Source of the DNA: Macrostomum lignano
Lineage: Eukaryota
Direction: 5' to 3'
Length of the DNA stretch: 34,293 bases
NCBI GenBank assembly: GCA_002269645.1
Contig: NIVC01003965.1
Coordinates: 1 to 34,293, forward strand
Shown: positions 1 through 21,400 of the stretch, one piece after another
How positions within the stretch are numbered: position 1 is the first letter of the stretch
Layout: the number at the start of each line of letters is the position of its first letter
Made by a program: the position numbers and the translations under genes
Notes under the pieces: generated by a model
What the model was told of the DNA's origin: nothing
Seen by the model: only the letters and a program-made list of their open reading frames with translations
The model's database searches: none

Positions 1-111
1 ATCTCCAGTTGAAGAAGTCTTTCCTGGCGTGTTGAAGTCGGGTACCAGTTTGTCGCTGGTTGGCTCTCGGATCAAGATTTGTGCATTGAACACGTTTCCA
101 GCGATGCACAG
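1..111 (-). CDS. Exon 18 (partial): domain 11 C-half
   Basis: ttgcag|LCIAGNVFNAQILIREPTSDKLVPDF..., open to the window edge. Confidence 0.82.
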   Translation of the reverse strand, partial: MCIAGNVFNAQILIREPTSDKLVPDFNTPGKTSSTGD

Positions 112-3100
112 CTGCAATCACGATCGTTGACGATTAGTTAGATTAATGTTATATACGAGCGTAGTTACTAAGCGAGTAAGCATATCCATATCGAAAACAG
201 GAATACAACATCTAAACTTTACCCTTGAAATCACAGCAGCGGGTCGGCAGCCAAAGACAGTAAGATCGATTTTCAATGCGGCTTTGAGGGGAAGAATGTA
301 TCCAAAAAGCTCTCTGTATGTGCCACCAGTGACTGCGAATGATGGCAGCAAGTCCGAGCGACTGAAGGCATCAACGAGGCATGCTGAAAATCAAGTAGTC
401 AGTTTGCACAAATGATTAATCGCATCTTGTAAGCTGGGTTTCCAAAGAAACTCGAGAACTAAAACTAAAAAGTTTCTTTTTAAACGTTGTTTTAACTTAC
501 AAGTAGTAGTAGTCGGGGTTGTTATTGTAGTTGTTGGAGTCGTCGTCACAGTCGTGGTGGGCGTAGTTGTAGTTGTAGTAGTGGTAGGTGTAGTTGTTGT
601 AGTGGAAGTCGAAGAGGTGCTTGTCGATGTTGGCGTTGTTGTAGTTGTAGATGACGTTGGTAGAGTAGTTGGCGTTGTGGTTGTTGAAGTTGTTGTTGGT
701 GTACTTGTTGTGCTTGTTGACGTACTTGTGGTAGGCGTGGTAGTTGCTGTGGTTGTCGTGTGTGTTGTAGTCGTTGTGGTTGTTGGTGTTGTTTGACATG
801 TGTCGTTAAGCGGCAAAAAGCAAGCTCGTATAGTCAAGAAAAACTGATAGTTCGTTGCAGGAGCTCGAAGAGCAGTAGGCTTGACTTGGAGCTCAACCAT
901 GTCGATGTTCAAATTGTAGCACAGTTGAGAGCTACTAGTTTCATAGTTTATTGAGTCGGCGAAGATAACCGGATAGTCGGAATATGTTCTTCGATATATT
1001 ACGTTTGCCATCTTCACATTACCTCCAATTAGACAAACCTGTAATAATGAGAATCAGGGAAGCCGTGCCGGTTTTGATGAACCAAAAATGTTTAGTAGTG
1101 ACTTAAAACTGACCTGCGCTTTTCCTAGAATCTTATTTATTTTTCTAGTGTTGAAGCTACCTACATAACAAAGGCACTACAGTGCAAAAGCAAAATAAAA
1201 TATAACAAAATTGTGGTTTAATAGACTTTCACTGTTAAGCCAGAGAAGATTAAAAATAAAAGCTGCGTCATCTTTCGTTGTACCCTATTATACATACCTG
1301 ATAAACAGTCAAGGCTCCCCGGCATCCACGAGCTGTGAGGTCAATCGCTATGTATCCACCGCTGGAAACTGAAATGTTCCAGCCAGTAGCGCCGTCAAAC
1401 GTCGCACCAGTGATCGTAAATTGCGGCAAGTACACAGGACTCGATAAACCATTAACGACGGGACAAACTGTAATGAACGTGAAAATGTCTTATTTATTAA
1501 GTTATTAATACACTACTTCTCGAATACAGCTCTCAATAACAATTGAGCACTTAAAAGAATCATGTAACGATCCTATTTACTTGTTGTGGGCACTGTTGTA
1601 GTACTTGTACTTGTCAGAGTAGTTGTAGTGGTAGTGGTCGACGTTGTCGGCGTAGTTGGTGTGGTTGTTGTGGGTGTTGTAGTTGTTGTAGTGGTCGTTG
1701 TTGTCGGAGTTGTCAAGCAGGTATTATTCAAAGGTGTGAAGCAAGCCTTGATTGTGATGTAAGCTCGAAATGCCGTGTCGGAGCTGAAAGCGCTCTTCAA
1801 CTGTTGCGGTGAGATGCGCACACCAGTGAGCATCATTCCTGTAGGCGGAGTGAAGCACAACGGATCGGAAACCCCAGTAGCTGACTGGCTTGCAGACGGA
1901 AGATTCGGACTGAATGGTCCTCCGTATGTAGTTTGATACAGGATGTAGGAACTCTGAATGTTTCCTAGTAGACAAATCTGCAAAAACCGTTGTGTGGTAC
2001 ACAATGTGCATTGTCTAGTGGTATGTCTGAAATGTATTAGCAAAGTGTCACGTTGTAACGAAATTCCTGCTCAATACTCACGCTCTCAACAGTAATTGGC
2101 ATGCGGCAGCCAAACACGGAGATGTCCACTGTCATTGCGTAGGTACCACCAGTTCGAATCATGTACCCTGAAACAGTGTAATTGGCTCCACTGACTGCAA
2201 ATGATGGAATAAAGCGCTCATCCGACAAGCCATCAACTGCACATGAAGGCGTAGTTGTAGTAGCAGTGGTCGTTGTGCTCGTCGTCGTGCTCGTCGTTGA
2301 TGTCGACGTGGTGGGTGTAGTTGTCGCTGTTGATGTTGTCGTCGGTGTAGTCGCAGTCGTTGTTGTGCTCGTCGAAGTGGTTGGTGTTGAAGTTGTCGTT
2401 GAGGTAGTCGTCGTAGTACACGATACTGGCAGAGGAGTGAAACAGGCCTCGATGGAAAGGAAAAACTGATACAACGAATCGCCTGAGGCTGCGCTTTTAA
2501 ACTCTTTCGGAACAATTCTCAGCTCGGAAATGGGAAGCATTGGGTAGTAGCACAGCGGTGTAGCAGTGTCACTTGTATTGTACAGCGACTGCTCGAAGAA
2601 GTCCCAGTAGAGGGTGGAGCCTTGACGGATGATAAGATCAGCTCGTTTTACATTACCGCCGAACAGACAAATCTAAAACGGAACGCATCTAATTTTAGCA
2701 TTTGAAATTGCTATTTTATTTAAATATCAAGAAAAGAACAAGTTACATACCCTATTAATTAGGATCGTGTGTGCGGCAACCGGATACAGAAATGTCCACA
2801 TAGACGCCTTCCACTGAGCCTCTGGTACATTATATCCTGTTAACGGATTATAACTAGGAGCATTGATAGAAGAACTAGGAATCAAGACGCCGTTGAGTCC
2901 GTTCACCAAACAGGATGTTGTTGTCGACGGAGTGGTTGTAGTAGTGCTAGTTGCTGTTGTGGTCGATGTCGGCGTTGTGCTAGTAGTTGTGGGAGTTGTT
3001 GTTGTGGATGAAGTAGTCGACGTTGTAGAAGTCGTTACAGGTTGAGTTTGACAGGCCGTAGACAGAGGCGCGAAACAGCCCTCAAGGCTCAGGAAGAATA

Positions 3101-6100
3101 AATAATTCGTTTCCAGCGACGAGCTGTTCAGTAGTGCGACTGGCGTGATTGCAATTCCTGTCGCGTTTGCTCCCAGAGTTATGCAAAGAGGAGTCAACGA
3201 AGACGAGACAGATACCAAATTGGATTCCAAGACAAGATCAAACCGACCGGTCGGATAAGTCGTCTGGGTAGACACTGTTACCTGCCTTACATTTCCTGTC
3301 ACACAAACTCTCGTTAGGTATGTAGGAACAGGATTACATCCTCCAGCTGTCAAATCTATGATAAGATCTCGTCTCGGACTCACTGGCATCTCGTATCGAC
3401 CAGTTACATAAGTGGCGCCGGTAATGGCCCAATCAGGTATGTACTTTCTATCACTAAGGCCATTGAGTGCTGGACAAATTGTAGGCTTGACAGTAGTTGT
3501 AGACGTTGTTGTCGTTGACGTTGTCGTAGGAGTTGTAGTTGTGCTGGTAGTTGTAGGTGTTGTAGTGGTTGTTGAAGTAGTCGTCGGTGTAGTAGTAGTG
3601 CTACTAGTTGTAGTAGGCGTTGTAGTCGTGCTTGTAGTACTCGAAGTCGGAGTGGTTGATGTAGTTGTTGAAGTGGGGGTTGTTGGTGCGACTGTGGTAG
3701 ACATCGTCGTTGGAGTTGTAGTGGTAGTAGGAGTAGTCGATGTCGATGTTGTTGGTGTAGTTGTGGTTGACGTTGTCGTTGGTGTCGTTGTCGTTGACGT
3801 CGTCGTGGGTGTCGTTGTTGTGGTGGTGGTTGTTGTAGTCGTAGTAGTGAGACAGCTGGCATTTAAGGCAGTGAAGCAGCCGTAGATATTCATGTAAAAC
3901 GTGAAATCTGATCCTGTTCCAGGAGTCATTGTCTGTGGCATCAGCTGCAAACCGGTGATGTCTCTGTTCACTTGAAGACAAAGTAGCCCGTTTCCACCCG
4001 TAACGGATGCAGGGAAAAGCACAAGCCTAGAATCCAGATTGTTCTGTACTGAAATCAGAGTCGTTTGCACATTTCCACCGAGACAGACGCTAAAAATTCG
4101 AATTGGCGCACGACATCCGCGAGCTGAGATATCCACCATTATTGAACTAAGTTGTGGAACAACAAATGCTCCTGCTCGATTAATAGATGCCCCAGAAATG
4201 TCTTGATCTGGTATAAACTGCGCGCTTGTCATTCCGTCGACCACAGGACAGTCTAAAAATCATATTTTTACAGACAAATTATGAATTATAACAAAAAAAC
4301 AATAAAATGAAACGAAAAGGTTAGATTTCTATTACTACTAATTCTTACAGGTCGTAGGTGTAGTTGTTGTAGTAGAAGTTGTTGTCGGCGTCGTCGGAGT
4401 AGTGCTTGTCGTTGTGCTGGTTGTCGTTGAAGTAGTTGAAGGCGTGGTTGTAGTTGTACTGGTTGTTGTAGGAGTTGTTGATGTCTTCGAACTTGTTGTA
4501 CTTGTTGTTGGCGTGGTTGTTGATGTCGTTGTAGTAGTTGTGGTTGTTGTAAGGCAGGACGAGTTTAAGTTGCTGAAGCAGCCATAGATCGATAAGAAGA
4601 AGTAGTAGGAACTTGCTGTCGTCTTGAATAGCTGCGGTTCTACCTGAACACTGATGACATCTCTGTTTACATCAATGCACAGAATTTCTCCTTCCTTTGC
4701 AGTGAGCGTAACCGAGTCAGGGATCAGGTAGGGAATCACGTCTGTGTTGAATCGCACCAGAACAAATGCTTGAGCAACGTTTCCAGCTATGCAAACCTAA
4801 AATTTAGGTTAGTGTGATATTATAGTCAATGATTGTGTCAGTTGGCAGAAATGCTGCTTTTCTTACTCTTAGAACCCGAGTTGCGGGACGACAGCCTCTC
4901 GACGAGATATCGACAATGACAGACGTTCTAGGCTGAAGTGTAAACGCTCCTGAGACTTGACGAGTGCTGTTACCGAATGTCGCAATGTCGATAGCGGGAT
5001 CATCGAAGGGTACAGCATACCATCGACACTGGGGCAATCTGCAATTGAGCGCCAGATTTATGCAATATAAAATTCCAATGCCCATACAGAATCGATAGAA
5101 AAGACAGTCAACAGTTTTGTAAATGGATTTACAATTTAATTGTCTAGAAATGAACTCACAGGTTGTACTCGGGGATGTTGTAGTCGTACTTGTTGGTGTC
5201 GTTGTGGTCGGCTTCGTTGTCGTGGTCGTCGACGTTGTTGTTGGAGTTGTTGATGTAGTCGTTGTTGTTAATGTTGTTGTTGGAGTAGTTATAGTCGTCG
5301 AACTGGTCGGTGTGGTGGTCGTTGTTGAAGTCGATGTCGTAGCACTTGTGGTAGTTCTAGGTGTAGTAGTTGATGTAGTAGTTGACGTCGTAGTCGTTGG
5401 CGCAGTGCAAGTGCTCGGCAGTGGTTCGAAGCAACCCTCAATGGTGACGGAAAACCGGAAGTTTGTCGCAGCCGAATCATACGACTTTACCAACTGAGGA
5501 GCAATTCTCACTGCCGATATGTTGAATCCGATCGAGTAGCAAAGCGAGTCGGCCATGGCGTCGCCGGTGGTTGTGAAAGATAGCTCAGAAAAGACCAGAT
5601 TTCCAGTGACGCTTCTTTTTAAGTGAATGTTAGCTTGTTTGATGTTTCCGTACAGACAGATCTGAATTTTTTAATGGAAAAATGGAATTCTAAAGAAATT
5701 GCTTAATAATTGTTTATTAACAATAGTTTTATTCAAAAAGCTCTACCCTTTCAATGTAGACTGGATTTGGTCGGCATTTCACGGCAGACAGATCGATATC
5801 CATAAAACCAGAGGTGGACCTTAAAATGCTGTATCCAAATGTGGGGTCAGACGAGACTCCGCTGATAGAGTAGGACGGGATGTAGGTACTGCTAGTCAGT
5901 CCATTGATCAGTGGGCAGACTGCAATAAAACAGGTACATACGTTTCCAATATTTCGTTTAGACCTTTGTTTTTAATTACTCCTAATTACTTGAAAATTAG
6001 GCAAAAAAGTAAGCATTGGACTTTTATGAGTCTAAATGTACCGTTTTGAAAGTTATTGAGAAATACTTAAAAATCAGAGTAGCTCGTAGTTATAGTACTC

Positions 6101-9100
6101 GTAAATAATTTTAGTCATTGATTTTTCATTCTGTAAGAATTGATGTTTTTCGTAATGCTGCTAGCTGGCTGTGAGTACCTGACTGGAGTAGCCTTTGTGG
6201 CTCACTTTTTTATTGGCTTGGTTGAATTCGTGAAATTCACTCTCTGGGTCAGTAAAGCTTTCTCCATCACATTCTCAACTCCATTTGTGATCATCTGTGG
6301 CGGGATGCCTGACTTGGTATTAGAATTTTGCCGCGCCGCTCATATGTGGCCCTGACGGCCTCTGAGGTGCTGTGTAGTAATGCCCCATTCTCCCTTCTCG
6401 CTTAAATGTAATGCTGCCAAATTTATTGTCTGAGAGGACTTCTACTTCTCGTATTGTGGTCCTTATTTCCATTAACTTGTTGACAAGCAAGTTAACAAAG
6501 CAAGTTAACTTTTATAAACGATACACAAAGGATGCAGAATGCTCTGCGAGGTGTAGCTTGGAGGTGATGCATTCCAATTTTTAGCTCCCCTCCCATGTCC
6601 ATGCAATGGGTTTGATTTTACTTGCAGTCACATAGAGTCACATCGACTTTTTGTAAATCAGGAGTCGGAGAACGTCAGCTCGTGGGCAAAGCCTCTCTAT
6701 CCGGCCCTCGGGTCCTTCAAAACTTCACAATTAGCAATCCGGCCCGCTCAATGTATACATCTCTACCCAGCGCTCTGCTCTCTAACCTTCTTTCTCCTCT
6801 CTTCCTTCCGGCAGGAAAATTTTTCCACGGGAGGTTTTCCCACCGAGTCTTTCCTGCCGAGTTTTCCCCGCCGAGATTTTCCCGCAGCGAGGTTTTCCCG
6901 AAGAGGTTTACCAGTCTGAATTTCAAGTCCTATTGAAAATTGTTGACCCTGTTTTTATCTGTAGCAACATAAATCCTTCAAACTGATTTGTTAACTCTGC
7001 TGTGTAAAACAGAACTTCTACTTAGCAGAAGTTATTTCTGTTTTAAAGAGGATGTGAACTTAAGCGCGATTTGGAAGCCGTGAGTCCAGCAACCAAACCG
7101 CTGCGAAATTCTCACTATTCAGACCCGAAATAGACAAGAAAAACGTAATTGATCTTTCTTCCACCCCGGCCGCTTCTGCTTGGTATAAATGGGAAAATGG
7201 GGATTTTATGTGAACTTAAGGCTCTGAAATGGAAGCGGTGGCCGATTCCAGTAGAGAGATCCGATAGAGAAACCGGCTCAATCGGCCACCGCTTCCATTT
7301 CAGAGCCTTAAGTTCACATGAAATCCCCATTTTCCCATTTATACCAAGCAGAAGCGGCCGGGGTGGAAGAAAGATCAATTACGCTTTTCTTGTCTATTTT
7401 GGGTCTGAATAGTGAGACTTTCGCAGCGGTTTGGTTGCTGGACTCACGGCTTCCAAATCGCGCTTAAGTTCACATCCTCTTTAGAAACTGTTTTAGAGCG
7501 CTTTAATACCACAGATCTGCAATGAACCATTCATTGTAGAACATGGCCAACCGAAGTAAAATGACGCGTTTCTTTGTAAATCGTACAAGTTGAAATGGGG
7601 GCCGATTTTCATTGCAAAATTCATTGGCGATATAAGGAGGTGTTCGCTTTTTAGTTCTAAAAAAAGCCGAATAGCTCCCCTTCTGACAAGTGAACAAGTC
7701 GACATTTCCTGGGGGTCACTCACTCATAAATTAACAAGCTATTGTTTTATGAAATACTTACTAGGGGGACTCGTCGGCAAGCAAAGTTACGGAGAAAATT
7801 TCACCTGTTCGTATTTCTAATGTATTGTTCTAGACGGGTTTTTCTCCTTGAACGAAACCTCTCCCTGCTCGCTTAATTCGGAATTCGGAAATCCATAATA
7901 TGAGATATTATGGATTTAGTGCTAAAATTAGTGACAGCTTCTTATGTTGCTAATGCATTTTTGCAGAAAAAAACTGGTTTCCTATGAAATTTACATGATT
8001 TTCGAGTGTAACATCCTTCTACTTCAGCTGTCCACGCCATGAGATACTTTATCTATACGTACATCTGGTCCACTATACATATATATCATTTTTAACATAA
8101 ACACATTATATGCTTATCTCAGTAGTTATCTTCAGCCTGAAGATTATTTTGTAAATTTATCTTTTTTGCAGAGAGGGATAAACTTTTGATAACCTTTTGG
8201 TAATCCCTCTTGAACCTTTTGGTTATTGTTGAGGAATAATCCTTTTGGTTCAGAAGGGATTACATAGAAGTTGGGTGCTAAAAAGGGCTTAAAAGTATTT
8301 AGTGCAGCTGGATAGACTAAGAGCAGAGACTAAATGAGGGTAGTGAAGAGATTTAACTACCCTCATATAGAACTGCTGTAGTTCGGAGCACCGAATTAAA
8401 ACAATTGAAACCCATACAAATCACATGGCTTCGAATGAAAAATGCTCAGCAGTATAAAACCTACTTGTTGGCTTAGGAGTCGTAGAAGTTGTCGTAGTGG
8501 TTGTTCCAGTGGTGCTCGTGGTCGGTGTGGCAGTCGTTTGCGTTGTGGATGAAGAAGTTGTGCCAGTTGTAGTTGTCGCAGGTGTCGTCGTAGAAACTGT
8601 TGTTGGAGTTGATGTCGATATTGAAGTAGTTTGTGTAGATGCTGTCGTGCTGGTTGTAGTTGGAGTCGTTGATGTGGTGGATGTGGTTTTAGTAGACGTT
8701 GGTGTTGTTGGGGTAGTGGTAGTGCTTGTAGTTGTTGTTGGCGTTGTCAGACACACTGCGGAAAGCGGCAAGAAGCACGCGTTGATCGTGAGGTAGAACT
8801 GGTACTGGGTTTTGTTCGGTGCCGACGACTTGAACTCCAATGGAAAAATTCCAATCTTGGCCGCAACTAGTTTAATGTCGTAGCACAGATCTCCAACATC
8901 GCTCGATACGGATGCTGATCTCGGCACGGGAACGAACGGTTTATCGAATGTTTCCCCGTACAAAATGTTGGCCCTTTTTACAGTGCCACTGATACAGATC
9001 TGAAACGAGTTATTGTTAGGTGAAGAAATTTCTTAAATAAATATAATTTTTAAACCAAAGTCGTGAGAATTCGAATTTGTTGAATCGCTTGTAAAATATC

Positions 9101-11615
9101 AAACTCACTGTTTCGATTCGAATCGGGGCACGACAAGATCCAAGTACCAGGTCAATTTGCATGACGTCATTTTGGTGAACCAGCCAGCCGCGAAGCGGAT
9201 CATTCGTCGCGTGGTTCACGGCGGTGAGCGGAATATAGGAGTAGTCCGACATGCCGTTCACAATGCGGCAGTCTAAAATGGTTATGTGCCAAGAAACATA
9301 AAAGTCAATGAAAAGCTAAAATAAGCTAAACTTTCATATAGCGAAATTTGTTGAAAGTTTTCATTTTTGGACGTTTCTGCTCTCTTTCGAGCATATTGTA
9401 TGCAGCTTAGTCATGCAATAAGTGAGGATTAATTTTTTACTGATATTGAAAATATTAGTGCAGCAATTCTTACAAGTCGTAGTGGTAGGTGTCGTTACAG
9501 TGGTGGTTGTCGGTGTTGTGCTGGTTGTGGTTGAGGTTGTCCGAGTTGTTGTTGGCGTTGTCGGTGTCGTCGTCGTAGAAGTGGATGTTGTCGTGGTCGA
9601 AGTAGTGCTGGTGCTGCTGGTTGTGCTTGATGTGCTGGTAGTGCTGCTAGTAATGGCAGTCGGTGTTGTCAGACAGGACGAGTTTAAGTTGCTGAAGCAG
9701 CCATAGATCGATAAGAAGAAGTAGTAGGAACTTGCTGTCGTCTTGAATAGCTGCGGTTCTACCTGAACACTGATGACATCTCTGTTTACATCAATGCACA
9801 GAATTTCTCCTTCCTTTGCAGTGAGCGTAACCGAGTCAGGGATCAGGTAGGGAATCACGTCTGTGTTGAATCGCACCAGAACAAATGCTTGAGCAACGTT
9901 TCCAGCTATGCAAACCTAAAATTTAGATTAGTGTGATATTATAGTCAATGATTGTGTCAGTTGGCAGAAATGCTGCTTTTTCTTACTCTTAGAACCCGAG
10001 TTGCGGGACGACAGCCTCTCGACGAGATATCGACAATGACAGACGTTCTAGGCTGAAGTGTAAACGCTCCTGAGACTTGACGAGTGCTGTTACCGACTGT
10101 CGCAATGTCGATAGCGGGGATCATCGAAGGGTACAGCATACCATCGACACTGGGGCAATCTGTAGTTGAAAAGAGGCATTGAGATGCGCTATTTTCTTAA
10201 GGGGCCGGGACTAAAAGAGTTCTAATGAAAGGTATGTCTTAAAATTAATATCTGTATCAGTTATAAATCATTAACTTTTGATAACTGATTTACTAACACT
10301 GAACTTACAAGTCGTAGTGGTAGGCGTCGTTGTTGTGGTGGTTGTCGGTGTTGTGCTGGTGGTTGTGGTGGATGTCGTCGGAGTTGTAGTGGGTGTTGTC
10401 GGCGTCGTTGTAGTAGTAGTAGATGTAGTCGTCGGGGTCGTAGTAGTGCTGGTAGTGGTAGTGGAAGTCGTAGTGCTGGTGGAGGTAGTTTGGCAGCTGT
10501 CATTAACCGGTGTGAAGCAGCCGTCGATGGTGAGGAATACCTGGTAGTTGGTGGCCGACAGGGCCCCGGACTTCAGTGCGACTGGATAAAAGGCAAGCCG
10601 AGCCATCCTCGTATTCAGCTCATAGCACAGCCTGGCGCCAGTGACATCAGAAAACAGGGAGCTGGACGGCTCAAATGGGACGTAGCGGCTACTGGTGGTC
10701 GGCATGTACTGCACTAAAGCTCGCATCACGTTTCCAGTCATGCACAGAGTGTTCACAAAAATTTCAGTAGTTCGACAGCCATCGACAATGAAGTCGAACT
10801 CCATCTGATCGTTGAAATTAATAAGAAAGCTGCCGGTGACTCCCGGCCGTCCACCAGAGATGGATTTGTCCGGGATGTAAGACTTCTGCGACAGACCGTT
10901 CACGTAGTCGCAGACTGAAGATTTTTTTAAATTAGAATTTTTAGCCTATTAGTATGAAAACCTTCTGCATCTAAACCTTAAAATTTGAGATTTAGGAGAT
11001 CGATAACTTGTCAGAACGGGAGATTAGAGACGTCGAGACATCCTATGCAGGTCTCTCATGGGCTACCAGGGGATAAAAAGTCTATCAAGTAATGGATTTT
11101 TTTTGTCCAGACCTTTACTTATAGGGCTCCATTCGAATGCTTCAGTTGACACCCGTCACGGCTCCTACAGGTACCTCCTACACCGTTGACGCAAACTTTT
11201 CAGGGCTTTTTTTCGAATCGCTAAATTACTCGTAATAAAAATTTATTTAGTTGCAAGAATATACAACAATAATGATCATGAATGATCAGCGGTGCCGCAC
11301 TCACCTGGTGTGGTTGTCGGCAGCCGTGTTGTTGTAGTTGTAGTTGGCGTCGTAGTTGAAGTTGTCGTGGGCGTCGTTGTAGTGACCGTGGTGGTGGGAG
11401 TGGTTGGAGTTGGGTGGTGAAGAAGTACTTGGTGGTGAGCGGCACGCACGAGCAGAAGGGATCCGCTGTCGTTGTGAAGCCGGCAACCGGCAATGTCAGG
11501 ACAGCTAGAAGGGCTGCCGCGGCGAATATTCCTGCTGAGAATGGAGTTATAAAGTCATAGGATGCACGATTTAGTGGGTACTGAAACTAGTTCTTGTGGA
11601 ATGACTGCATTTCAT
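1..11615 (-). CDS. Large secreted mucin-like protein: signal peptide + >=11 tandem Cys-rich discoidin(F5/8C)-like domains separated by Thr/Pro/Ser stalks; 18 exons, 3' end outside window
   Basis: Hand-built exons (minus strand): 11615-11582, 11534-11305, 10914-10309, 10159-9987, 9915-9474, 9272-9109, 8999-8465, 5919-5747, 5661-5160, 5038-4867, 4796-4349, 4252-2751, 2672-2082, 1977-1581, 1467-1298, 1038-501, 383-223, 111-<1. All junctions are GT..AG and exon lengths match phases except 11534-11305 and 5038-4867 (each 1 nt short). Repeated motif C-x2-V[ND]G[LM]-x5-IP...D[IL][ST]xxGCR...[VI]C[LI]xGNV...LC...[VI]xP...FxLxIx[GA]CF...C then poly-Thr. The discoidin assignment is inference from motif resemblance. 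Confidence 0.85.
223..383 (-). CDS. Exon 17: domain 11 N-half
   Basis: SCLVDAFSRSDLLPSFAVTGG...IDLTVFGCRPAAVISR|GTAAAG; 161 nt. Confidence 0.85.
501..1038 (-). CDS. Exon 16: domain 10 C-half + stalk
   Basis: VCLIGGNVKMANV...FFLTIRACFLPLNDTC + long Thr run; T|GTAAGT; 538 nt. Confidence 0.87.
1298..1467 (-). CDS. Exon 15: domain 10 N-half (not in ORF track)
   Basis: ICPVVNGLSSPVYLPQFTITGA...IAIDLTARGCRGALTVYQ|GTATGT; 170 nt. Confidence 0.85.
1581..1977 (-). CDS. Exon 14: domain 9 C-half + stalk
   Basis: tttgcag|ICLLGNIQ...YITIKACFTPLNNTC; A|GTAAAT; 397 nt. Confidence 0.87.
2082..2672 (-). CDS. Exon 13: domain 8 C-half, stalk, domain 9 N-half
   Basis: ICLFGGNVKRADL...FFLSIEACF...SCAVDGLSDERFIP...GCRMPITVES|GTGAGT; 591 nt, phase 0-0. 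Confidence 0.88.
2751..4252 (-). CDS. Exon 12: domains 6, 7 and N-half of 8 with stalks
   Basis: ORF 2727..4244; acceptor tttttag|AC TGT CCT; donor AGG|GTATGT; 1502 nt, phase 1-0. Confidence 0.88.
4349..4796 (-). CDS. Exon 11: domain 5 C-half + stalk
   Basis: Domain part identical to exon 5; different stalk; T|GTAAGA; 448 nt. Confidence 0.87.
4555..5041 (-). repeat. Internal duplicate of 9674-10162 (domain 5 = domain 2, including the intervening intron)
   Basis: By eye, 2 substitutions and 2 one-base indels over ~488 bp. Confidence 0.95.
4867..5038 (-). CDS. Exon 10: domain 5 N-half (copy of exon 4, 1 nt short)
   Basis: Near-identical to 9987-10159, but GGG at 4996-4998 versus GGGG at 10116-10119 gives a frameshift. 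Confidence 0.8.
5160..5661 (-). CDS. Exon 9: domain 4 C-half + stalk
   Basis: ttcag|ICLYGNIKQANI...FSVTIEGCFEPLPSTC + Thr run; T|GTGAGT; 502 nt. Confidence 0.87.
5747..5919 (-). CDS. Exon 8: domain 4 N-half (not in ORF track)
   Basis: ttgcag|ICPLINGLTSSTYIPSYSISG...MDIDLSAVKCRPNPVYIER|GTAGAG; 173 nt. Confidence 0.85.
6820..6912. repeat. Degenerate ~15-bp tandem repeat (GAGGTTTTCCCGCC-like)
   Basis: About 6 imperfect copies containing TTTTCC. Confidence 0.55.
7047..7480. mobile_element. Palindromic non-autonomous DNA transposon (Kolobok-like) in intron 7
   Basis: ~201-bp arms (about 4 mismatches) around a 32-nt loop (7248-7279); ends TTAA|AGAGGATG...CATCCTCT|TTAG. A TTAA target with RR termini fits Kolobok; a TA-target (Tc1/mariner) reading is also possible. 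Confidence 0.7.
8465..8999 (-). CDS. Exon 7: domain 3 C-half + stalk
   Basis: tttcag|ICISGTVKRANIL...FYLTINACFLPLSAVC + Thr run; donor A|GTAGGT; 535 nt. Confidence 0.87.
9109..9272 (-). CDS. Exon 6: domain 3 N-half
   Basis: YCRIVNGMSDYSYIP...DLVLGSCRAPIRIET|GTGAGT; 164 nt. Confidence 0.87.
9474..9915 (-). CDS. Exon 5: domain 2 C-half + stalk
   Basis: tttag|VCIAGNV...FFLSIYGCFSNLNSSC + Thr run; 442 nt, phase 0-1. Confidence 0.88.
9987..10159 (-). CDS. Exon 4: domain 2 N-half
   Basis: YCPSVDGMLYPSMIPAID...DISSRGCRPATRVLR|GTAAGA; 173 nt, phase 1-0. Confidence 0.88.
10309..10914 (-). CDS. Exon 3: domain 1 (unsplit) + stalk
   Basis: cttcag|TC TGC GAC TAC GTG AAC; T|GTAAGT donor; 606 nt, phase 1-1; ORF 10271..10903. 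Confidence 0.88.
11305..11534 (-). CDS. Exon 2: signal-peptide core (GIFAAAALLAVLTLPVAG) and first Thr stalk
   Basis: Hydrophobic stretch with small-residue cleavage site; donor CCAG|GTGAGT at 11304; needs +1 C near 11412 (ACC ACC C[C]A ACT) to enter the Thr frame. Confidence 0.75.
11582..11615 (-). CDS. Putative exon 1 (MKCSHSTRTSF)
   Basis: ATG at 11615; the frame stops unless spliced; phase-1 GT donors at 11581 or 11587 join the acceptor at 11535 in frame with the hydrophobic segment. Donors are weak and the intron is only 47-53 nt. Confidence 0.45.
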
Positions 11616-13869
11616 AAATCAATATCTTTACGCTCAATTTTTATTTTATTACATGTACTGTACTCTTAGCTTTTCAACTCGACTTCTGTATTGCTATTAA
11701 ATGTTTTTAAACGATGCCATCAAGCATAAGGGGACTTTCAACCAGACGAGTAAAGTCCAAACTTCGAGGTGTGTCAGCACTAATTGACGCTTGACTGCAC
11801 CGCAGTCCCAATACAAACTTCGTATATTGCGCAAGAATGGGGGGGTACACGGGACTACTCTTGAAGTCGTTAATATTCTCTTTCAATATTAACCACAAAG
11901 CAAAAAGCAAGCGCCCAACACGGGAATATAGCGGTTCGAAATTCGATAACTTATCAGCTCGCAAACTTCGTGTGTACACTTTTCTATTCGCCCCACATTT
12001 TTTGCTTGCTACTAGTTAGTAGGCTGTCTGATGAACTGAAGGAACATCTGCGTCAAATGTTTAGTAGGTAGAGTTTATTAAGTTTCACTATTCGCATCTG
12101 GAATGATATCCAAATTCCATATTCTATTTCCAGAAATCCATGGTAGAACTCCATATACCGACCTGCTTGTGAGGGCGGCGAGTTCGCTAGCTTAAAAAGC
12201 ATTTCGTCGAGTTTATTGAGTGCAGGGACAGGAATGTTGGGGGTTGCCCGACTGGCGCCATGCCGGCTGGTACGCAACACCCCGCGCTCCTGTTGGGTGC
12301 CATTAAAGATGCGAATGAATAGAGAACTTATCCGCCGCTCTTCGCTTTTTAGACATTTTCTGCATCTCAAGTTGCTAAAATCCAGTGTTTTTTATAAAGC
12401 GCACTGAATGTGGGTCGTCGGCGTGCGTTTCTTCGAATCTTCCAAAAGCTTCTACGCCCACGGATTTTTTCTAAGACAATGCGAACTTTATATGGCTTGC
12501 AGGGTGGATGCTTTGCCGGTTTTTTTTACAAAAACGCAAGTTTTCTGCAATGATAAAATTTCTTAGAAATTTCTACGAGCTACAACTTTCTCAACTTCTC
12601 ATCGTCAGCTTGCAAGGCAGGGGTTACGGGTTGCACCGTAGCCCTGCGCTGAGGCAGAAAGAAAAAAACTGCCATTGTGATCTTTTCCATTGGAGACCAA
12701 ACTGCCACGTTTTAATGTGCTGCATGCATATGTCATAGAGAAGCATCTGCCGCGTTCAGTGGACACACATATACCAACGAACCGTTTTTAGTATATGGAA
12801 ATTTTTCTGAAATCTATCGCTTATATACCTACCGACAGACAACTCATTTTTAGTATATTGGAAGTTGCTTTGAAAAATCTGCATCTGTCCTGTTTTCTCA
12901 CTGCTTCCATCTTTCAAGTGTCAAATCTTCTGACTTATGTTCTTAAACTAGCAGCTTGTTTTGGAGGGCCACGAATGCTAACGACAGAAGTAGTTGAAAC
13001 AGAACCGTTAAATGCTGGCACATTTAACAGCACCTACAACAATAAATACGAGTACTTGCTAAATACGCTCGTATGGGTAAATAGCGTGAGTAAAAATTAT
13101 GTAATTACACTAAAACAAATTCGGTGGGAGTTTGCTCTGCCCTTAGCAGGTGAGGACAACGAGAAGCAGGAAGTTCTCAATGTTCGGACCGCGTTCCTTG
13201 TCCTTGAGTGAAGCAACTGACCCAGACGTAAATTCTTGGCACTAATTGTCTGCAACCCGTGAGACTGGGCCTTTAAATAATTTAGCGATCCTTACCGATA
13301 AAAATTCTATGCACAGAATAACAGTGCCTCCAGCAACAAGCTTTACTGACAATAAGTAGTCAAAAATAGAAATTGCCTACCAAGCAGTGCAGATCGATCT
13401 GCGAGTGGCATCTCGGAGTTTGGCGCAGGGCCGTCTGGTGCAGTCAGCCCTTCGGAAAAGAGTCGCTGTGACTTGAATAAACGAACTGGGTGAAGGAATA
13501 ACTTTTCTTCTTCTAGTCAAACCTGAAATTCCTGCTCTCCCGACGAGTAGCAATTACTAAAGAATTTATGCAGCTACAGAAAAAGACTCGACAAGCTGCA
13601 TAAGGCGCCGAATCCTACCAATCAAGCTAACCCTAGATCTATTGTCCCTTAAATCGGACAATAGAACTCCCCCCTTTACCTAAGCAGTGCACAATTAGCC
13701 TCGAAAAGAAAATTAAAGAGGGCAGAATAGCGCCGAACTCAAGTTGAACAACTCTGACTGGGCTGGGCATGAGCCCAGGTGAATGAGAGACAGTAGTGAA
13801 ATTCTCTCTAAGTTTACCAATGCAATCGCGCGACCCTACGAGCATATAGGGTACTAAAGTGTCTGGTTG

Positions 13870-13921
<52 letters not shown>
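13870..13921. repeat. (GATA)13 microsatellite
   Basis: Direct reading. Confidence 0.98.
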
Positions 13922-13922
<1 letters not shown>

Positions 13923-14114
13923 TAGATAGCGAGAAAGAGCGAGCGAAGCGAGCTCTTTCGAGCTTGCTTGCCGCAGCCAATCACGCTGAAAGCACGCACA
14001 CAAGATCACCGGAAACGATTAAGGCAGCTGGAAAGCCAATGGGCGCGGTAAGCGCTTTTATCCAGAGGAACTACCTACTGGAACCAGCCATGCCGAACGA
14101 AAATCAGACTACTA

Positions 14115-14828
<714 letters not shown>

Positions 14829-15042
14829 TATTCGAGCTTTCCAGCGTCAATTTTAGCTTTCCCGCGCCATTTTAGCTTTCCCGCGTCAATTTTAGCTTTC
14901 CAGCGCTGGTTTGGGCCTATTGGCGCTGATTTCAGCGTTCCGGCGCTGATTTAGGGATCCTGGCGCTGATTTGGGGATCCTGGCGCCAAATTTGGCTTTC
15001 GGCGCCAATTCGAGCTTTTCGGCGCTGGTTTGGGCTTTTTAG
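14829..15042 (+). repeat. Short diverged copy (~1.3 units) of the 22.3-27.9 kb satellite
   Basis: Same subunits (GAGCTTTCCAGCG, GGGATCCTGGCGCCAAATTTGGCTTTCGGCGCCAATT), same orientation. Confidence 0.9.
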
Positions 15043-15434
15043 GCATGGCTTCAGGGATCAGCACTGATTTACATTCAATTGGCACTATAAAAATCAAAAG
15101 TGTCATTTTTTGACTTGTTATTGATTGTTGATTACTTTGTTATTGATTATTTTTAGAGATGACTATTTGCTGAGAGTTGATTTTTTTCAATTTATGCGAC
15201 TCAGGATATACTGAATATCTACTACCTTGTTATTATGACTGAGTTATGGTTTACTTTTACGATTTAATTGTGTAATGTCTTTGTCTTAATCTTTTACTCA
15301 CTTAATGCACTGTTAGCGATGAGTTATGATGCCAATTAGAATCGCCCATATCGCTTTTATCGCTTTTTATCACCTTAATCCAGGTCATTCAGTCATGCTA
15401 CTCTCGTCCTACCTCCTCTCTGTATCTCTACCTA

Positions 15435-16783: not shown

Positions 16784-18602
16784 ACTGGCGCCTGCATGTG
16801 TATTCTAATATCAAAACAAAACTAATAAAAGCGAAAAATAGAAGCGTCATGTAAAAATAAAAGAAGCGTCATGTAAAAATCTTAAAAGCGTCATGTAAAA
16901 AATCTTACAAGCTTCATGTAAAAAATCATAAAAGCGTCATGTAAAAATGAAAGAAGCGTCATGAAAAGATCATAGAAGCATCATGTAAAGATCATAGCAG
17001 CGTTATGTAACAAGTAAAAAAGCGTCATGAAAAAAGAAAAGATGCGTCGTCATGTAAAAACCATAGAAGCTTCATGTAAAAATGATAAAAGCGTCAGGTA
17101 AAAATCATAGCAACGTCAGGTAAAAATCATAGAAGCGTCATGTAAAGATCATAGCAGCGTTATATAACAAGTAAAAGAAGCGTCATGTCAGACTATAAGA
17201 AGCGTCATGTCAGACTATAAGAAGCGTCATGTCAGACTATAAGAAGCGTCATGTCAGACAATTTATAAGCGTCATGTAAAAAAGAAAATAAGCTTTATGT
17301 AAAAATGAAAAAGCGTCATGTAAAAATCAATAAGCGTCATGCAAAAATCAATAAGCGTCATGTAAAAAGAAGCGTCATGTATTATTTTTTATTATTTTTA
17401 TATAATAAAAAGCATCATATTATTATTTTTTACAAGACTTGAAAAAGCAAAAAGGCTTGACATCTCAAAAATCCCCCGTAAACCTTAAAATCTCAGTAAT
17501 TCGTCCAAAGAGTCAGCAGAGTTTACGGGAGGCTTGTTTTATTTTCAATATGAAGTTTTTGTCATTTTACATGACGCTTTTTAAGTTTTGAAATGACGCT
17601 CCTTTTTGACATGACGCTTCTTTTTACATGACGCTTATTGATTTTTACATGACGCTTCTTATAGTCTGACATGACGCTTCTTATAGTCTGACATGACGCT
17701 TCTTATAGTCTGACATGACGCTTCTTATAGTCTGACATGACGCTTCTTATAGTCTGACATGACGCTTCTTATAGTCTGACATGACGCTTCTTATAGTCTG
17801 ACATGACGCTTCTTATAGTCTGACATGACGCTTCTTATAGTCTGACATGACGCTTCTTATAGTCTGACATGACGCTTCTTATAGTCTGACATGACGCTTC
17901 TTATAGTCTGACATGACGCTTCTTATAGTCTGACATGACGCTTCTTATAGTCTGACATGACGCTTCTTATAGTCTGACATGACGCTTCTTATAGTCTGAC
18001 ATGACGCTTCTTATAGTCTGACATGACGCTTCTTATAGTCTGACATGACGCTTCTTATAGTCTGACATGACGCTTCTTATAGTCTGACATGACGCTTCTT
18101 ATAGTCTGACATGACGCTTCTTTTACTTGTTACATAACGCTGCTATGATCTTTACATGACGCTTCTATGATTTTTACCTGACGTTGCTATGATTTTTACC
18201 TGACGTTGCTATGATTTTTACCTGACGTTGCTATGATTTTTACCTGACGCTTTTCATCATTTTTACATGAAGCTTCTGTGATTTTTTACATGACGACGCA
18301 TCTTTTCTTTTTTCATGACGCTTTTTTACTTGTTACATAACGCTGCTATGATCTTTACATGATGCTTCTATGATCTTTACATGACGCTTCTTTCAATTTT
18401 ACACGACGCTTCTATGATTTTTACATGACGCTTCTATGATTTTTACATGACGCTTTTATGATTTTTTACATGACGTTTGTAAGATTTTTTACATGACGCT
18501 TTTAAGATTTTTACATGACGCTTCTTTTATTTTTACATGACGCTTCTATTTTTCGCTTTTATTAGTTTTGTTTTGATACTAGAATACACATGCAGGCGCA
18601 GT
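16784..18602. mobile_element. Foldback-type element with long internally repetitive inverted arms
   Basis: Ends ACTGGCGCCTGCATGTGTATTCTA / TAGAATACACATGCAGGCGC-AGT; arms ~16784-17380 and ~17570-18602 built from AAGCGTCATGTAAAAA-type 21-23-bp units; non-coding spacer; no TSD found. Confidence 0.8.
17649..18110. repeat. 21 exact copies of 22-bp unit ATGACGCTTCTTATAGTCTGAC
   Basis: 462 bp / 22; the inverted counterpart in the left arm has only 3 copies (17187-17252). Confidence 0.95.
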
Positions 18603-18861
18603 CCCAAGGCTCTTTGCTGAATTTTGCAGACAAGTTTGTGGACAAGTCTGGCTTGAATTTATTGTTTGACTTGTTATTTTCTTCTACCGAAAACCGATTA
18701 AAGGCTTTCAAACATTTCGAAAAAAGGTGGCATATAAATTATGCGAAGACTACATGTATATTTACAAATTGTACATGTATACTCGTAGCTAAAGCAACTC
18801 GTCGTCAGAGGCTTCCCCTCACCAACCCCTCTGAGGGATATAAGCAAGTGCGTCTTATCAG

Positions 18862-20250
18862 GGATAAGGAATTAGGAATCGTGGATTCGGATTCCAACAT
18901 GAGGAATCAGGGATAGGGAATTAAGAATCGGGGATTCGGATTCCACATGAGGAATCAGAGTTAGGGAATTAAGAATCGTGGATTCGGATTTCACATGAGG
19001 AATCAGAGTTAGGGAATTAAGAATCGTGGATTCGGATTCCAACATGAGGAATCAGGGATAGGGAATTAAGAATCGTGGATTCGGATTTCACATGAGGAAT
19101 CAGAGTTAGGGAATTAAGAATCGTGGATTCGGATTCCAACATGAGGAATCAGGGATAGGGAATTAAGAATCGGGTATTCGGATTCCACATGAGGAATCAG
19201 GGATAGGGAATTAAGAATCGGGGATTCGGATTGAAAAATGAGCTTCTCTCGGTTCTCTGATAGCTGGCAGTCTTTCAAACATTTAGAAGAAGGTGCCATA
19301 AGCTCCTCTCTGCCGTATGAATTATGATCGCCGACCCAGTCTTTTAAGCTTCTCGCGAAAGGTGCCATATGCCCTATCTGGGAAAGGGAATTAAGAATCG
19401 TGGGTTCGGATTCCACATGAGGAATCAGGGATGGGGAATTAAGAATCGGGGGTTCGGATTTCACATGAGGAATCAGGGATAGGGAATTAAGAATCGTGGG
19501 TTCGGATTCCACATGAGGAATCAGAGTTAGGGAATTAAGAATCGTGGATTCGGATTTCACATGAGGAATCAGGGATGGGGAATTAAGAATCGTGGGTTCG
19601 GATTCCACATGAGGAATCAGGGATGGGGAATTAAGAATCGGGGATTCGGATTCCACATGAGGAAGCAGGGATGGGGAATTAAGAATCGTGGGTTCGGATT
19701 CCACATGAGGAATCAAGGATAGGGAATTAAGAATCGTGGATTCGGATTTCACATGAGGAATCAGAGTTAGGGAATTAAGAATCGTGGATTCGGATTCCAA
19801 CATGAGGAATCAGGGATAGGGAATTAAGAATCGGGTATTCGGATTCCACATGAGGAATCAGGGATAGGGAATTAAGAATCGGGGATTCGGATTGAAAAAT
19901 GAGCTTCTCTCGGTTCTCTGATAGCTGGCAGTCTTTCAAACATTTAGAAGAAGGTGCCATAAGCTCCTCTCTGCCGTATGAATTATGATCGCCGACCCAG
20001 TCTTTTAAGCTTCTCGCGAAAGGTGCCATATGCCCTATCTGGGAAAGGGAATTAAGAATCGTGGGTTCGGATTCCACATGAGGAATCAGGGATGGGGAAT
20101 TAAGAATCGTGGGTTCGGATTCCACATGAGGAATCAGGGATGGGGAATTAAGAATCGGGGATTCGGATTCCACATGAGGAAGCAGGGATGGGGAATTAAG
20201 AATCGTGGGTTCGGATTCCACATGAGGAATCAGGGATAGGGAATTGAGAT
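18862..20250. repeat. 48-bp minisatellite (~22 units) with two copies of a ~150-bp spacer, 661-bp higher-order period
   Basis: Unit GGGAATTAAGAATCGTGGATTCGGATTCCACATGAGGAATCAGGGATA; spacers start at 19233 and 19894. Confidence 0.93.
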
Positions 20251-20423: not shown

Positions 20424-21400
20424 TTGACTTACTTGACTTAGCTGCAGGGCGGTCCGAAGACGCAGCGGGGAGGCGAGCGTCGCCCATTCCGCTAATCCCT
20501 GAAAGACCCGCATAGGCTAGGGCGCGGGGCCGGTCAGGGAGGTCTGCCGGTCCTGTCTGCAGCGTTGTCTTCGGTGGGGAAGACAGAGGCTCGCTTGGTG
20601 GCCCGGAGGAACCGGATGAGCCGTGGGATGTTCTCGGGCCGGCAAACGTCGTCCAGGGACGGGTTGGGCCCGAGGTGGTTGAGCCGGTCTCGGTTGAAGG
20701 CCGGGCAGTAGCAGACGAAGTGCTTGGCGTCTTCGTTCTCGAGGTTGCAGAAAGGGCAGAGTTCGCTCCGGCGGGCACTTCGGAGGAAACAGTGCCTGGC
20801 AAAGCAACCGTGACCTGTGAAGGTCATAGTGAGAGCGCGGATATCTTTTCGATTTTGGTTCAAAAGGATTCTCCGCAGCTTGAGGGACGGATTGGGCACT
20901 GCCGCACGAGATTGGCGGCAGTTGGAGATACCATCCCATCTGCGCAAGTGCAGGATGTCCGCCCAGTCGTTAATCTGACGATTAATGACAGTGGCGGGGA
21001 TGGGGGCCAGGGGCACCGGGCCAAGGGGCGAGCCGGAACAGCCCGCCTTAGCGAGGGAGTCGGCGAGCTCGTTACCTTTGAAGCCGGCGTGTCCTGGGAT
21101 CCACGTAATCCGGACGGTGTTCCTCCGAGCCAGCTTGTTGAGCTGAGCTGCCCGATACAGTCGCGGACTGTTCGGGAGTTCGTAGTGGTGTGACACAGGG
21201 CCTGCAAAGCGGCCTGGCTGTCAGAGTGAAAGAAAATTCTTCTGTCCTTGAAGTCCCTGCAGTGGAGCTCAGCTGCACAGGAGCTGATGGCAAGGACTTC
21301 ATTCTGGAAGACGCTGGAGAGTCTGCCAGTGTGTTGGGCGTGAGTAGCGATCACGCGGCCGTTGATAAAGATGCAGACTCTAAAGCCGGATAAATGAGTT
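20424..21400 (-). mobile_element. 5'-truncated non-LTR retrotransposon 3' end: RNase H + CCHC finger + 3' UTR and tail
   Basis: SVFQNEVLAI, FHSDSQAAL, WIPGHAGFKGNELADSLAK (non-LTR RNase HI motifs); CPFCNLENEDAKHFVCYC; stop at 20534; tail TAAGTCAAGTAAGTCAA at 20440-20424; frameshift from a 5-bp duplication at 21141-21150; the first TDGS-type acidic motif is missing. Confidence 0.9.

Follow-up and report, generated by a model that had tools for sequence, protein, structure and literature searches.

In the vertebrate gel-forming mucins MUC2, MUC5AC and MUC5B, long regions rich in Pro, Thr and Ser (PTS regions) are interrupted by cysteine-rich CysD domains of about 100 amino acids. Insect intestinal mucins and peritrophins intersperse chitin-binding CBM14 domains with Thr-rich mucin domains (PMC3065741), and sea-urchin Nectin, an extracellular adhesion protein, carries six FA58C (discoidin) domains in tandem (PMC10057474). 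Here we describe a locus in a flatworm, Macrostomum lignano, on contig NIVC01003965.1 (positions 1 to 34,293, the whole stretch analysed and hereafter called the window), the first 11.6 kb of which hold, on the minus strand, most of a gene for a very large mucin-like glycoprotein. None of the papers searched describes this gene. Its product alternates Thr-rich stalks with a module that we read as a very distant relative of the discoidin domain, and it is probably tethered to the membrane.

The closest domain array is that of Nectin, which the preliminary description of this DNA had rightly named as a tandem-discoidin protein, and the closest design analogues are the insect intestinal mucins and the CysD-interrupted gel-forming mucins. 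In Nectin the domains lie back to back, whereas the copies in the window gene are each parted by a PTS stalk. With the insect mucins the gene shares a design in which small disulfide-rich modules, carbohydrate-binding in the insects and perhaps also here, are combined in one secreted-pathway protein with Thr-rich mucin segments, which in the window gene would be O-glycosylated (PMC3065741). However, the insect module is a six-Cys peritrophin-A domain, unrelated to the jelly roll predicted here; the insect proteins are secreted into a chitin matrix, whereas paralogues of the window gene are membrane-anchored; and only the window gene keeps to a strict one-to-one alternation, over at least 11 units. 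Gel-forming mucins are built with vWD–C8–TIL, CysD/WxxW and cystine-knot domains, none of which was detected in the window product of about 2,100 amino acids, and their fold differs.

A giant array of modules on threonine-rich stalks

Scanning a six-frame translation of the whole window with a hidden Markov model (HMM) of the family placed all domain pieces on the minus strand, from 10918 to 142, and none elsewhere. The individual copies reached E values of 1e-8 to 1e-44, far beyond chance, and the array is therefore real. Three-frame translation and exon modelling gave 16 exons (11534 to 223, minus strand; Table 1), in which every border is canonical (AG/GT, for GT–AG introns), the phases are consistent and all 30 internal splice sites are intact. 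These exons encode ten complete domains (D1–D10) and the N-terminal half of D11, the second half of which lies beyond the window start, where the gene leaves the window; the preliminary description had counted at least 11 diverged domains, and its count holds. When the D5 N-half exon (D5N) is set aside, the remaining 865 + 1269 codons (2,134) are free of stops. The product exceeds 2,200 amino acids within the window, and this is probably about three quarters of the whole gene. By analogy with the paralogue P0001, the part beyond the window start would hold about three further domains, then a transmembrane helix with its tail.

The domain spans about 140 amino acids and is strongly diverged, with pairwise identities of 27–40% among the window copies and 12–13 invariant columns, six of them Cys; nine of the ten complete copies keep all six. 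It opens with the skeleton C.xVNG[LM]..xIP and closes with IxP...YxFxLxIxGCFxPLxxxC, so that the conserved cysteines and the start and end skeletons noted in the preliminary description are confirmed. Written out, the first half reads C.xVNG[LM]..xIP....G........ID....GCR.... and the second (I/V)C..GN(V/I)......LC.......P...K....Y.F.L.I.GCF.PL...C.T, followed by a Thr/Ser/Pro run. As had also been proposed, each domain is followed by a mucin-like stalk: the ten stalks measure 45–124 amino acids each, are 62–78% Thr, 7–20% Ser and 7–11% Pro, and together account for some 35% of the 2,134 residues that were read, giving the long Pro/Thr/Ser-rich regions by which mucins are recognised.

Exon structure follows the same rhythm. 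Domains start in phase 1, an optional phase-0 intron stands directly before the (I/V)C..GN motif (in D2, just ahead of VC.AGN), and stalks end in phase 1; D1, D6 and D7 lack the internal intron, and exon 1 ends with a phase-1 GTGAGT donor after 11305. Most cassettes are exon units of phase 1-1, so that duplication, conversion or skipping of a cassette would leave the frame intact. The domain-coding parts of D2 and D5, together with their intron, are nearly identical (10162–9672 versus 5041–4553). The differences amount to three coding changes, of which one is non-synonymous (V/F) and two are synonymous, a single substitution in the intron and two indels in homopolymers; no alignment is possible between the Thr-rich stalks. 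The near-identity looks like a gene-conversion tract of about 490 bp or a very recent duplication of an exon pair. The paralogue P0001 has one such cassette only, at the D5 position.

The 2.5-kb intron between the D3 and D4 cassettes contained no domain-coding pieces when scanned with the family HMM. It holds an inverted repeat (7041–7486) with 207-nt arms that are 98% complementary and 32 nt apart, giving mirror-image open reading frames (ORFs) of 87 amino acids on both strands; the repeat may be an element like a miniature inverted-repeat transposable element or a palindrome artefact of long reads.

The module is probably a very distant relative of discoidin

The preliminary description had called the domains discoidin-like and had named a galactose-binding-like beta-sandwich as the structure to look for. 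We modelled D1 and D7 with AlphaFold2, using only the window's own copies as the alignment, and both gave confident all-beta models (D1, predicted local distance difference test (pLDDT) 91.7 and predicted template-modelling (pTM) score 0.85; D7, 90.5 and 0.86). Foldseek searches of the PDB with either model returned almost exclusively galactose-binding-domain-like jelly rolls, at E values of 3e-5 to 1e-3 and template-modelling (TM) scores of about 0.5–0.6. The matches include IFT25/PP25 (E 3e-5), the C2 domains of factor V (1czs, E 1e-4) and lactadherin (3bn6, E 2e-4) and CBM32 (TM 0.58), as well as neuropilin b1/b2, factor VIII, the CASPR2 discoidin domain (5y4m), laminin/netrin LN and CBM29. 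Both models have the distorted jelly roll of solved discoidin domains, and the module is thus predicted to be a galactose-binding-domain-like jelly roll, the beta-sandwich that had been anticipated. Against viral structures, Foldseek returned only generic jelly rolls (E>1e-3), which are uninformative.

As a reference for profile–profile comparison with hhalign we used an alignment of 12 bona fide PF00754 (F5/8 type C) domains. The whole family aligned with it over 120 colinear columns (P = 0.0056), above all 32 reversed or shuffled controls. A subgroup with only two cysteines, from a chiton and other eukaryotes, aligned over 128 colinear columns with 73.5% probability (E 2.9e-5) and scored 35.8, whereas the best of 60 block shuffles scored 17.8; the same subgroup matched the Macrostomum copies with 99.1% probability (E 4e-19). 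The apparent link between the window domain and PF00754 is transitive only, reached through these intermediate relatives. In the alignment the terminal cysteines fall opposite each other, as do three further elements: the clasp GM...I.D..I, the strand with (V/I)DL and the last strand with its GC.

With the discoidin or F5/8 type C domains (lactadherin C2, factor V/VIII C1–C2, neuropilin b1/b2, CASPR2, DDR), the family shares the jelly-roll class, the cysteines on the first and last strands, the C..(L/N/D)GM...I.D..I start motif and a '...(V/I)DL' strand. Across the family, the initial Cys and that of '(G/A)CF' are conserved and align to the discoidin terminal pair. The Macrostomum module keeps this pair and a C..(N/D)GM...IPD..I start; it has lost the discoidin signatures ITASS, W...WLQVD and TQG, and its branch has gained four invariant cysteines that the two-Cys relatives lack. 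We conclude that the domain, on remote homology and fold together, is probably a strongly diverged and very distant discoidin relative and not a formal member of PF00754. Of the proposed discoidin identity, the fold and the apparent transitive profile link therefore stand, and formal membership and a direct profile match do not.

Single copies, joined window products and relatives gave no Pfam match of any kind, which separates the domain from the described mucin modules CysD/WxxW, vWD, C8, TIL and SEA; ZP, PKD and DUF3707 identities were rejected for the same reason. One PDB sequence match (9n30, E 0.34) was treated as chance.

A small family with few relatives

An HMM built from the window copies had been suggested as a probe of other proteomes. 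An exhaustive HMMER search with a nine-copy profile found only 16 proteins among 1.84 billion representatives, and none of the relatives P0001–P0015 matched PF00754 or any other Pfam family. Eight of the 16 (P0001–P0006, P0008 and P0009) are M. lignano proteins with uninformative automatic names. P0007 is a 'mucin-2-like' protein of the chiton Liolophura sinensis (XP_064614628.1), in which seven copies are parted by Thr/Pro stretches, and the remaining proteins come from ENA or Logan contigs. A word-indexed protein search found nothing with the nine window copies and P0012 only with a 23-sequence family alignment. An AT-rich eukaryotic contig (ENA ERZ25069853 ctg29007l, 1–15047; GC content 34.5%) carries at least eight tandem, mostly single-exon copies of a two-Cys, more discoidin-like version, so that the habit of forming tandem arrays is shared outside flatworms and chitons. 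The domain belongs to a small, unannotated spiralian family.

Within M. lignano, two protein fragments (P0017 and P0018) are 100% identical to window exons D3–D4 over 178 amino acids in tblastn and have the same splice junctions, including that of D3 between IRIET and ICISG. A second copy, P0006, is 84–94% identical, which fits the description of M. lignano as a hidden polyploid (PMC10468722). Exact-protein look-ups of three window ORFs gave no record on any other contig. Existing gene models (A0A1I8FZS0, P0003; A0A1I8J2C9, P0017; A0A1I8G1S0, P0018) split the locus into fragments and read some stalks out of frame, producing N/H/Y-rich artefact peptides, and fragments of the locus bear misleading automatic names ('ZP domain-containing', 'DUF3707 domain-containing', 'PKD').

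A possible binding ladder or structural knots

We consider it likely that the gene encodes a type-I, probably membrane-tethered, mucin-like glycoprotein that presents discoidin-fold modules on Thr-rich stalks. After a hydrophobic leader come the cassettes, each with a single module of about 140 amino acids and a single Thr/Ser/Pro stalk. The composition of the stalks suggests that they would be densely O-glycosylated, forming stiff bottle-brush spacers that may hold the modules at successive heights above the epithelial surface. By analogy with discoidin and CBM32 domains, the modules may bind glycan, lipid or protein, and their number would give multivalent avidity. The protein would then be a component of the glycocalyx or mucus interface, capturing particles or microbes or coupling secreted material to the cell surface.

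Several results weigh against this picture. At thresholds of E<=10 or 0.1, PF00754 matched none of the three intronless copies, the 510-amino-acid two-domain ORF or the joined products of 865 and 619 amino acids; sequence searches of the PDB with a single copy or the family profile gave nothing relevant; and the Macrostomum copies alone do not match PF00754 significantly (hhalign E 0.22). The TM scores of about 0.5–0.6 secure the fold class and not the subfamily. No conserved ligand-binding residues or pocket were identified among the copies, and ligand binding is purely inferred, because variability in the loops does not exceed that in the strands. The gene model was built from genomic sequence only; its two uncompensated frameshifts and missing ATG would also fit a decaying copy in a recently duplicated genome. 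The 3' end of the gene, and hence any transmembrane helix, lies outside the window, and the anchor is seen in paralogues only.

A serious rival, possible though doubtful in our view, is that the modules are structural or cross-linking knots in the manner of CysD, serving as disulfide-braced spacers of the stalks, in homotypic contacts and in protease resistance. The four additional invariant cysteines of the Macrostomum copies speak for it, as do the strict alternation with stalks and a pattern of conservation that is concentrated in the N-terminal clasp, the cysteines and the C-terminal strand and leaves no recognisable pocket. However, the characterised fold members matched by the models are nearly all binding modules (discoidin, CBM32, CBM29, neuropilin b1, laminin LN), and the domain bears no similarity to CysD/WxxW.

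Conservation across the copies also bears on what the modules could recognise. The preliminary description had suggested that each domain binds a different glycan. With strands as predicted, the frequency of the top residue is 0.51 in strands and 0.48 in loops, so that substitution levels are equal; only indels favour loops (5 gap cells in strands versus 35 in loops). We therefore found no support for a separate glycan per domain, and hypervariable loops on a conserved scaffold were rejected.

Paralogues point to a membrane anchor

The window gene is colinear with its paralogue P0001/P0002 (UniProt A0A1I8G2V1), at 37–54% identity per domain. P0001 opens with a signal peptide, carries the motif PFCSCVPLTTKYFFTT and at least 11 matches to the domain, and closes with a C-terminal stalk that is followed by a hydrophobic helix (YLTLIVLVCCLGGGFLLLLVIFIIVYAVY) and a basic tail. 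P0005 has a signal peptide, four copies, a transmembrane helix and a long basic cytoplasmic tail. In the window gene, the motif PFCSCVPLTTKYFFTT comes right after the signal peptide and is 15/16 identical to the P0001 N terminus; set beside domains that are only 37–54% identical, this suggests a constrained N-terminal element, perhaps with a role in sorting, processing or pairing.

By way of these paralogues, the window gene would have the type-I topology and plan of transmembrane mucins of the MUC1, MUC4 and MUC16 type: a signal peptide, a huge ectodomain, a single transmembrane helix and a short tail. It differs from them in carrying a ladder of beta-sandwiches on the ectodomain and in that its C terminus lies outside the window; the SEA, EGF and NIDO/AMOP domains of those mucins gave no Pfam match in the juxtamembrane regions of P0001 and P0005.

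The preliminary description had favoured a secreted mucus or adhesive protein. In that case the gene would encode a lectin array from gland cells, a component of the glue or footprint comparable to sea-urchin Nectin or sea-star Sfp1, and each of its modules would recognise its own glycan. The discoidin-like fold agrees with this, tandem FA58C domains occur in temporary adhesives (PMC10057474), the duo-gland adhesive system of M. lignano is well studied and has glycosylated components (PMC6410801), and, with the 3' end of the gene outside the window, an anchor-less form is conceivable. Nevertheless, both M. lignano paralogues with complete C termini are transmembrane proteins, and loop-focused diversification was not seen. 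Moreover, the footprint proteins are Mlig-ap1 and Mlig-ap2, which, like the predicted window product, are very large, repetitive, Cys-containing, glycosylated extracellular proteins of M. lignano (PMC6410801). Their domain set (KR-rich regions, C-type lectin, vWD/C8/TIL, EGF, LDLa, TSP1 and repeats of 221/255 amino acids; PMC6410801) is entirely different from that of the window gene, and identity with either protein was rejected on the published domain maps. With a transmembrane helix and a short cytoplasmic tail at the end of the colinear paralogue, tethering of the mucin to the membrane is more likely than secretion as a glue, and we regard the secreted array as improbable.

Frame breaks and the start codon

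Four indels disturb the assembled reading frame, all of them in C-, G- or AC-runs. In exon 1, one base is missing in a C-run at about 11414–11412, between PFCSCVPLTTKYFFTT and the first Thr run. The motif DPFCSCVPLTTKYFFTT is read in the frame of the hydrophobic stretch, the Thr run and the phase of exon 2 need another, and the switch falls at ACCACCC (11418–11412). The D5N exon has 172 nt, compared with 173 nt in its near-identical twin D2N, owing to CCC in place of CCCC at about 4996–4998 (GATGATCCC-GCT versus GATGATCCCCGCT), and here the joined coding sequence as assembled loses its frame. The N-half of D8 contains two compensating shifts, in a G-run (about 2811) and an (AC)n run (about 2770), between which the segment GVYVDISVSGCRTH lies in another frame; with a net change of -3 the exon stays open, the GCR cysteine is lost and the HMM score falls to only 5 bits. 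The twin alignment of D2 and D5 also shows a one-base indel in an A-run inside the intron. Because this is the pattern of long-read consensus errors, we rate assembly error above pseudogenization, and homopolymer errors of long reads are the most likely cause of the frame breaks.

The signal peptide that had been reported is present as a hydrophobic stretch in exon 1 but has no genomic ATG in frame with it; the ATG at 11610 runs into a TAG (11589–11587). In M. lignano, trans-splicing affects around 30% of genes, and the last bases of the spliced leader are ATG (PMC8629364). Were splicing to use the AG at 11588/87 or the one at 11582/81 (TTTCAG), this ATG would come to lie in frame, giving a predicted start of M(FQ)YPLNRASYDFITPFSAGIFAAAALLAVLTLPVAG and then F..., and the start codon is probably supplied in this way. 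Pairing the spliced-leader ATG with a cis-spliced acceptor at 11534 would be out of frame and was rejected; only the two AGs named are in frame.

It is unlikely that the locus is instead a decaying duplicate, pseudogene or null allele whose protein is made from another copy: the missing in-frame ATG, the uncompensated 1-nt deletions in exon 1 and D5N, the lost D8N cysteine, the second copy P0006 and the hidden polyploidy noted above would suit such decay, but the intact splice sites, the stop-free codons, the near-complete retention of the six cysteines, the confinement of every indel to homopolymer or dinucleotide runs, with another in the twin intron as the signature of long-read consensus, and a D5 cassette that can be skipped in frame (phase 1-1) argue against it.

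Features of the window

Table 1 Features of the mucin-like gene in the window
Feature	Position	Strand	Description
Exon 1	11305..11588	-	Signal-peptide-like stretch 11532-11479, motif PFCSCVPLTTKYFFTT 11460-11413, first Thr/Pro run; 5' border uncertain
D1 exon and 60-aa stalk	10309..10914	-	Phase 1-1 cassette, no internal intron; HMM E 2.6e-44
D2	9474..10159	-	N-half exon 10159-9987; C-half and 65-aa stalk exon 9915-9474
D3	8465..9272	-	N-half exon 9272-9109; C-half and 95-aa stalk exon 8999-8465
Intron between D3 and D4 cassettes	5920..8464	-	2.5 kb
D4	5160..5919	-	N-half exon 5919-5747; C-half and 83-aa stalk exon 5661-5160
D5, twin of D2	4349..5038	-	N-half exon 5038-4867; C-half and 67-aa stalk exon 4796-4349
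D6, 124-aa stalk, D7, 45-aa stalk, D8 N-half	2751..4252	-	Single 1502-nt exon
D8 C-half, 58-aa stalk, D9 N-half	2082..2672	-	HMM; UniProt fragment P0004 97% identical
D9 C-half and 45-aa stalk	1581..1977	-	Exon model, HMM
D10	501..1467	-	N-half exon 1467-1298; C-half and ~98-aa stalk exon 1038-501
D11 N-half exon	223..383	-	HMM E 1e-8

Beyond this gene, the window also holds repeats and probable fragments of mobile elements. A perfect (ATAG)n microsatellite of 178 copies (14115–14828) is the source of a 248-amino-acid 'LSIY' pseudo-ORF, and GC-rich ORFs at 15.4–16.9 kb had no Pfam match. Blocks of a 22-bp minisatellite in both orientations (16840–17368 and 17569–18549) are followed by a 48/96-bp tandem repeat (18857–20249). 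Minus-strand ORFs at 20534–21354 encode the tail of an RNase H domain (Pfam E 6e-8), a retroelement fragment. A 5.6-kb satellite (22341–27908) has a sub-unit of 20 bp and a higher-order repeat of 158/316 bp; its AT skew is strong (-0.36), and long spurious ORFs arise from it on the minus strand. In plus-strand ORFs at 30590–33099, a zinc finger resembling the B-box (E 1e-3) was found, as was the C-terminal portion of a Kyakuja-Dileera-Zisupton (KDZ) transposase (E 7e-6, slightly short of the gathering score); they probably belong to a degraded DNA transposon. No Rfam match was found in the window.

Implications

A wider proposal, to which we give little weight, is that the family is an unrecognised, spiralian-restricted branch of the discoidin superfamily that builds cell-surface mucins with a ladder of individually diverged binding modules. 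Such a branch would have members in a flatworm, in a chiton and in one or more further invertebrates, and would represent a new multivalent pattern-recognition or adhesion mucin; in M. lignano, the proteins could serve in the glycocalyx as receptors, either for capturing microbes or particles or for holding the secreted temporary adhesive to the microvilli of anchor cells.

For the gene itself, a mucin-like protein probably built from a cryptic discoidin-superfamily module and tethered to the membrane, there is a practical warning that current gene models fragment the locus under misleading automatic names. Pfam, PDB sequences and NCBI names offered no clue beyond 'mucin-2-like'. If our reading is correct, a domain family unknown to the libraries would be tied to the discoidin fold, and genes with comparable tandem arrays could be annotated in spiralians, among them flatworms and molluscs. 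It would also add a mucin design with no described counterpart in vertebrates or insects, in which PTS stalks and beta-sandwiches alternate one to one, probably on a membrane anchor. Because M. lignano is the reference species for temporary bioadhesion in which RNA interference, in situ hybridization and transgenesis are feasible, the function of such a protein would be directly testable.

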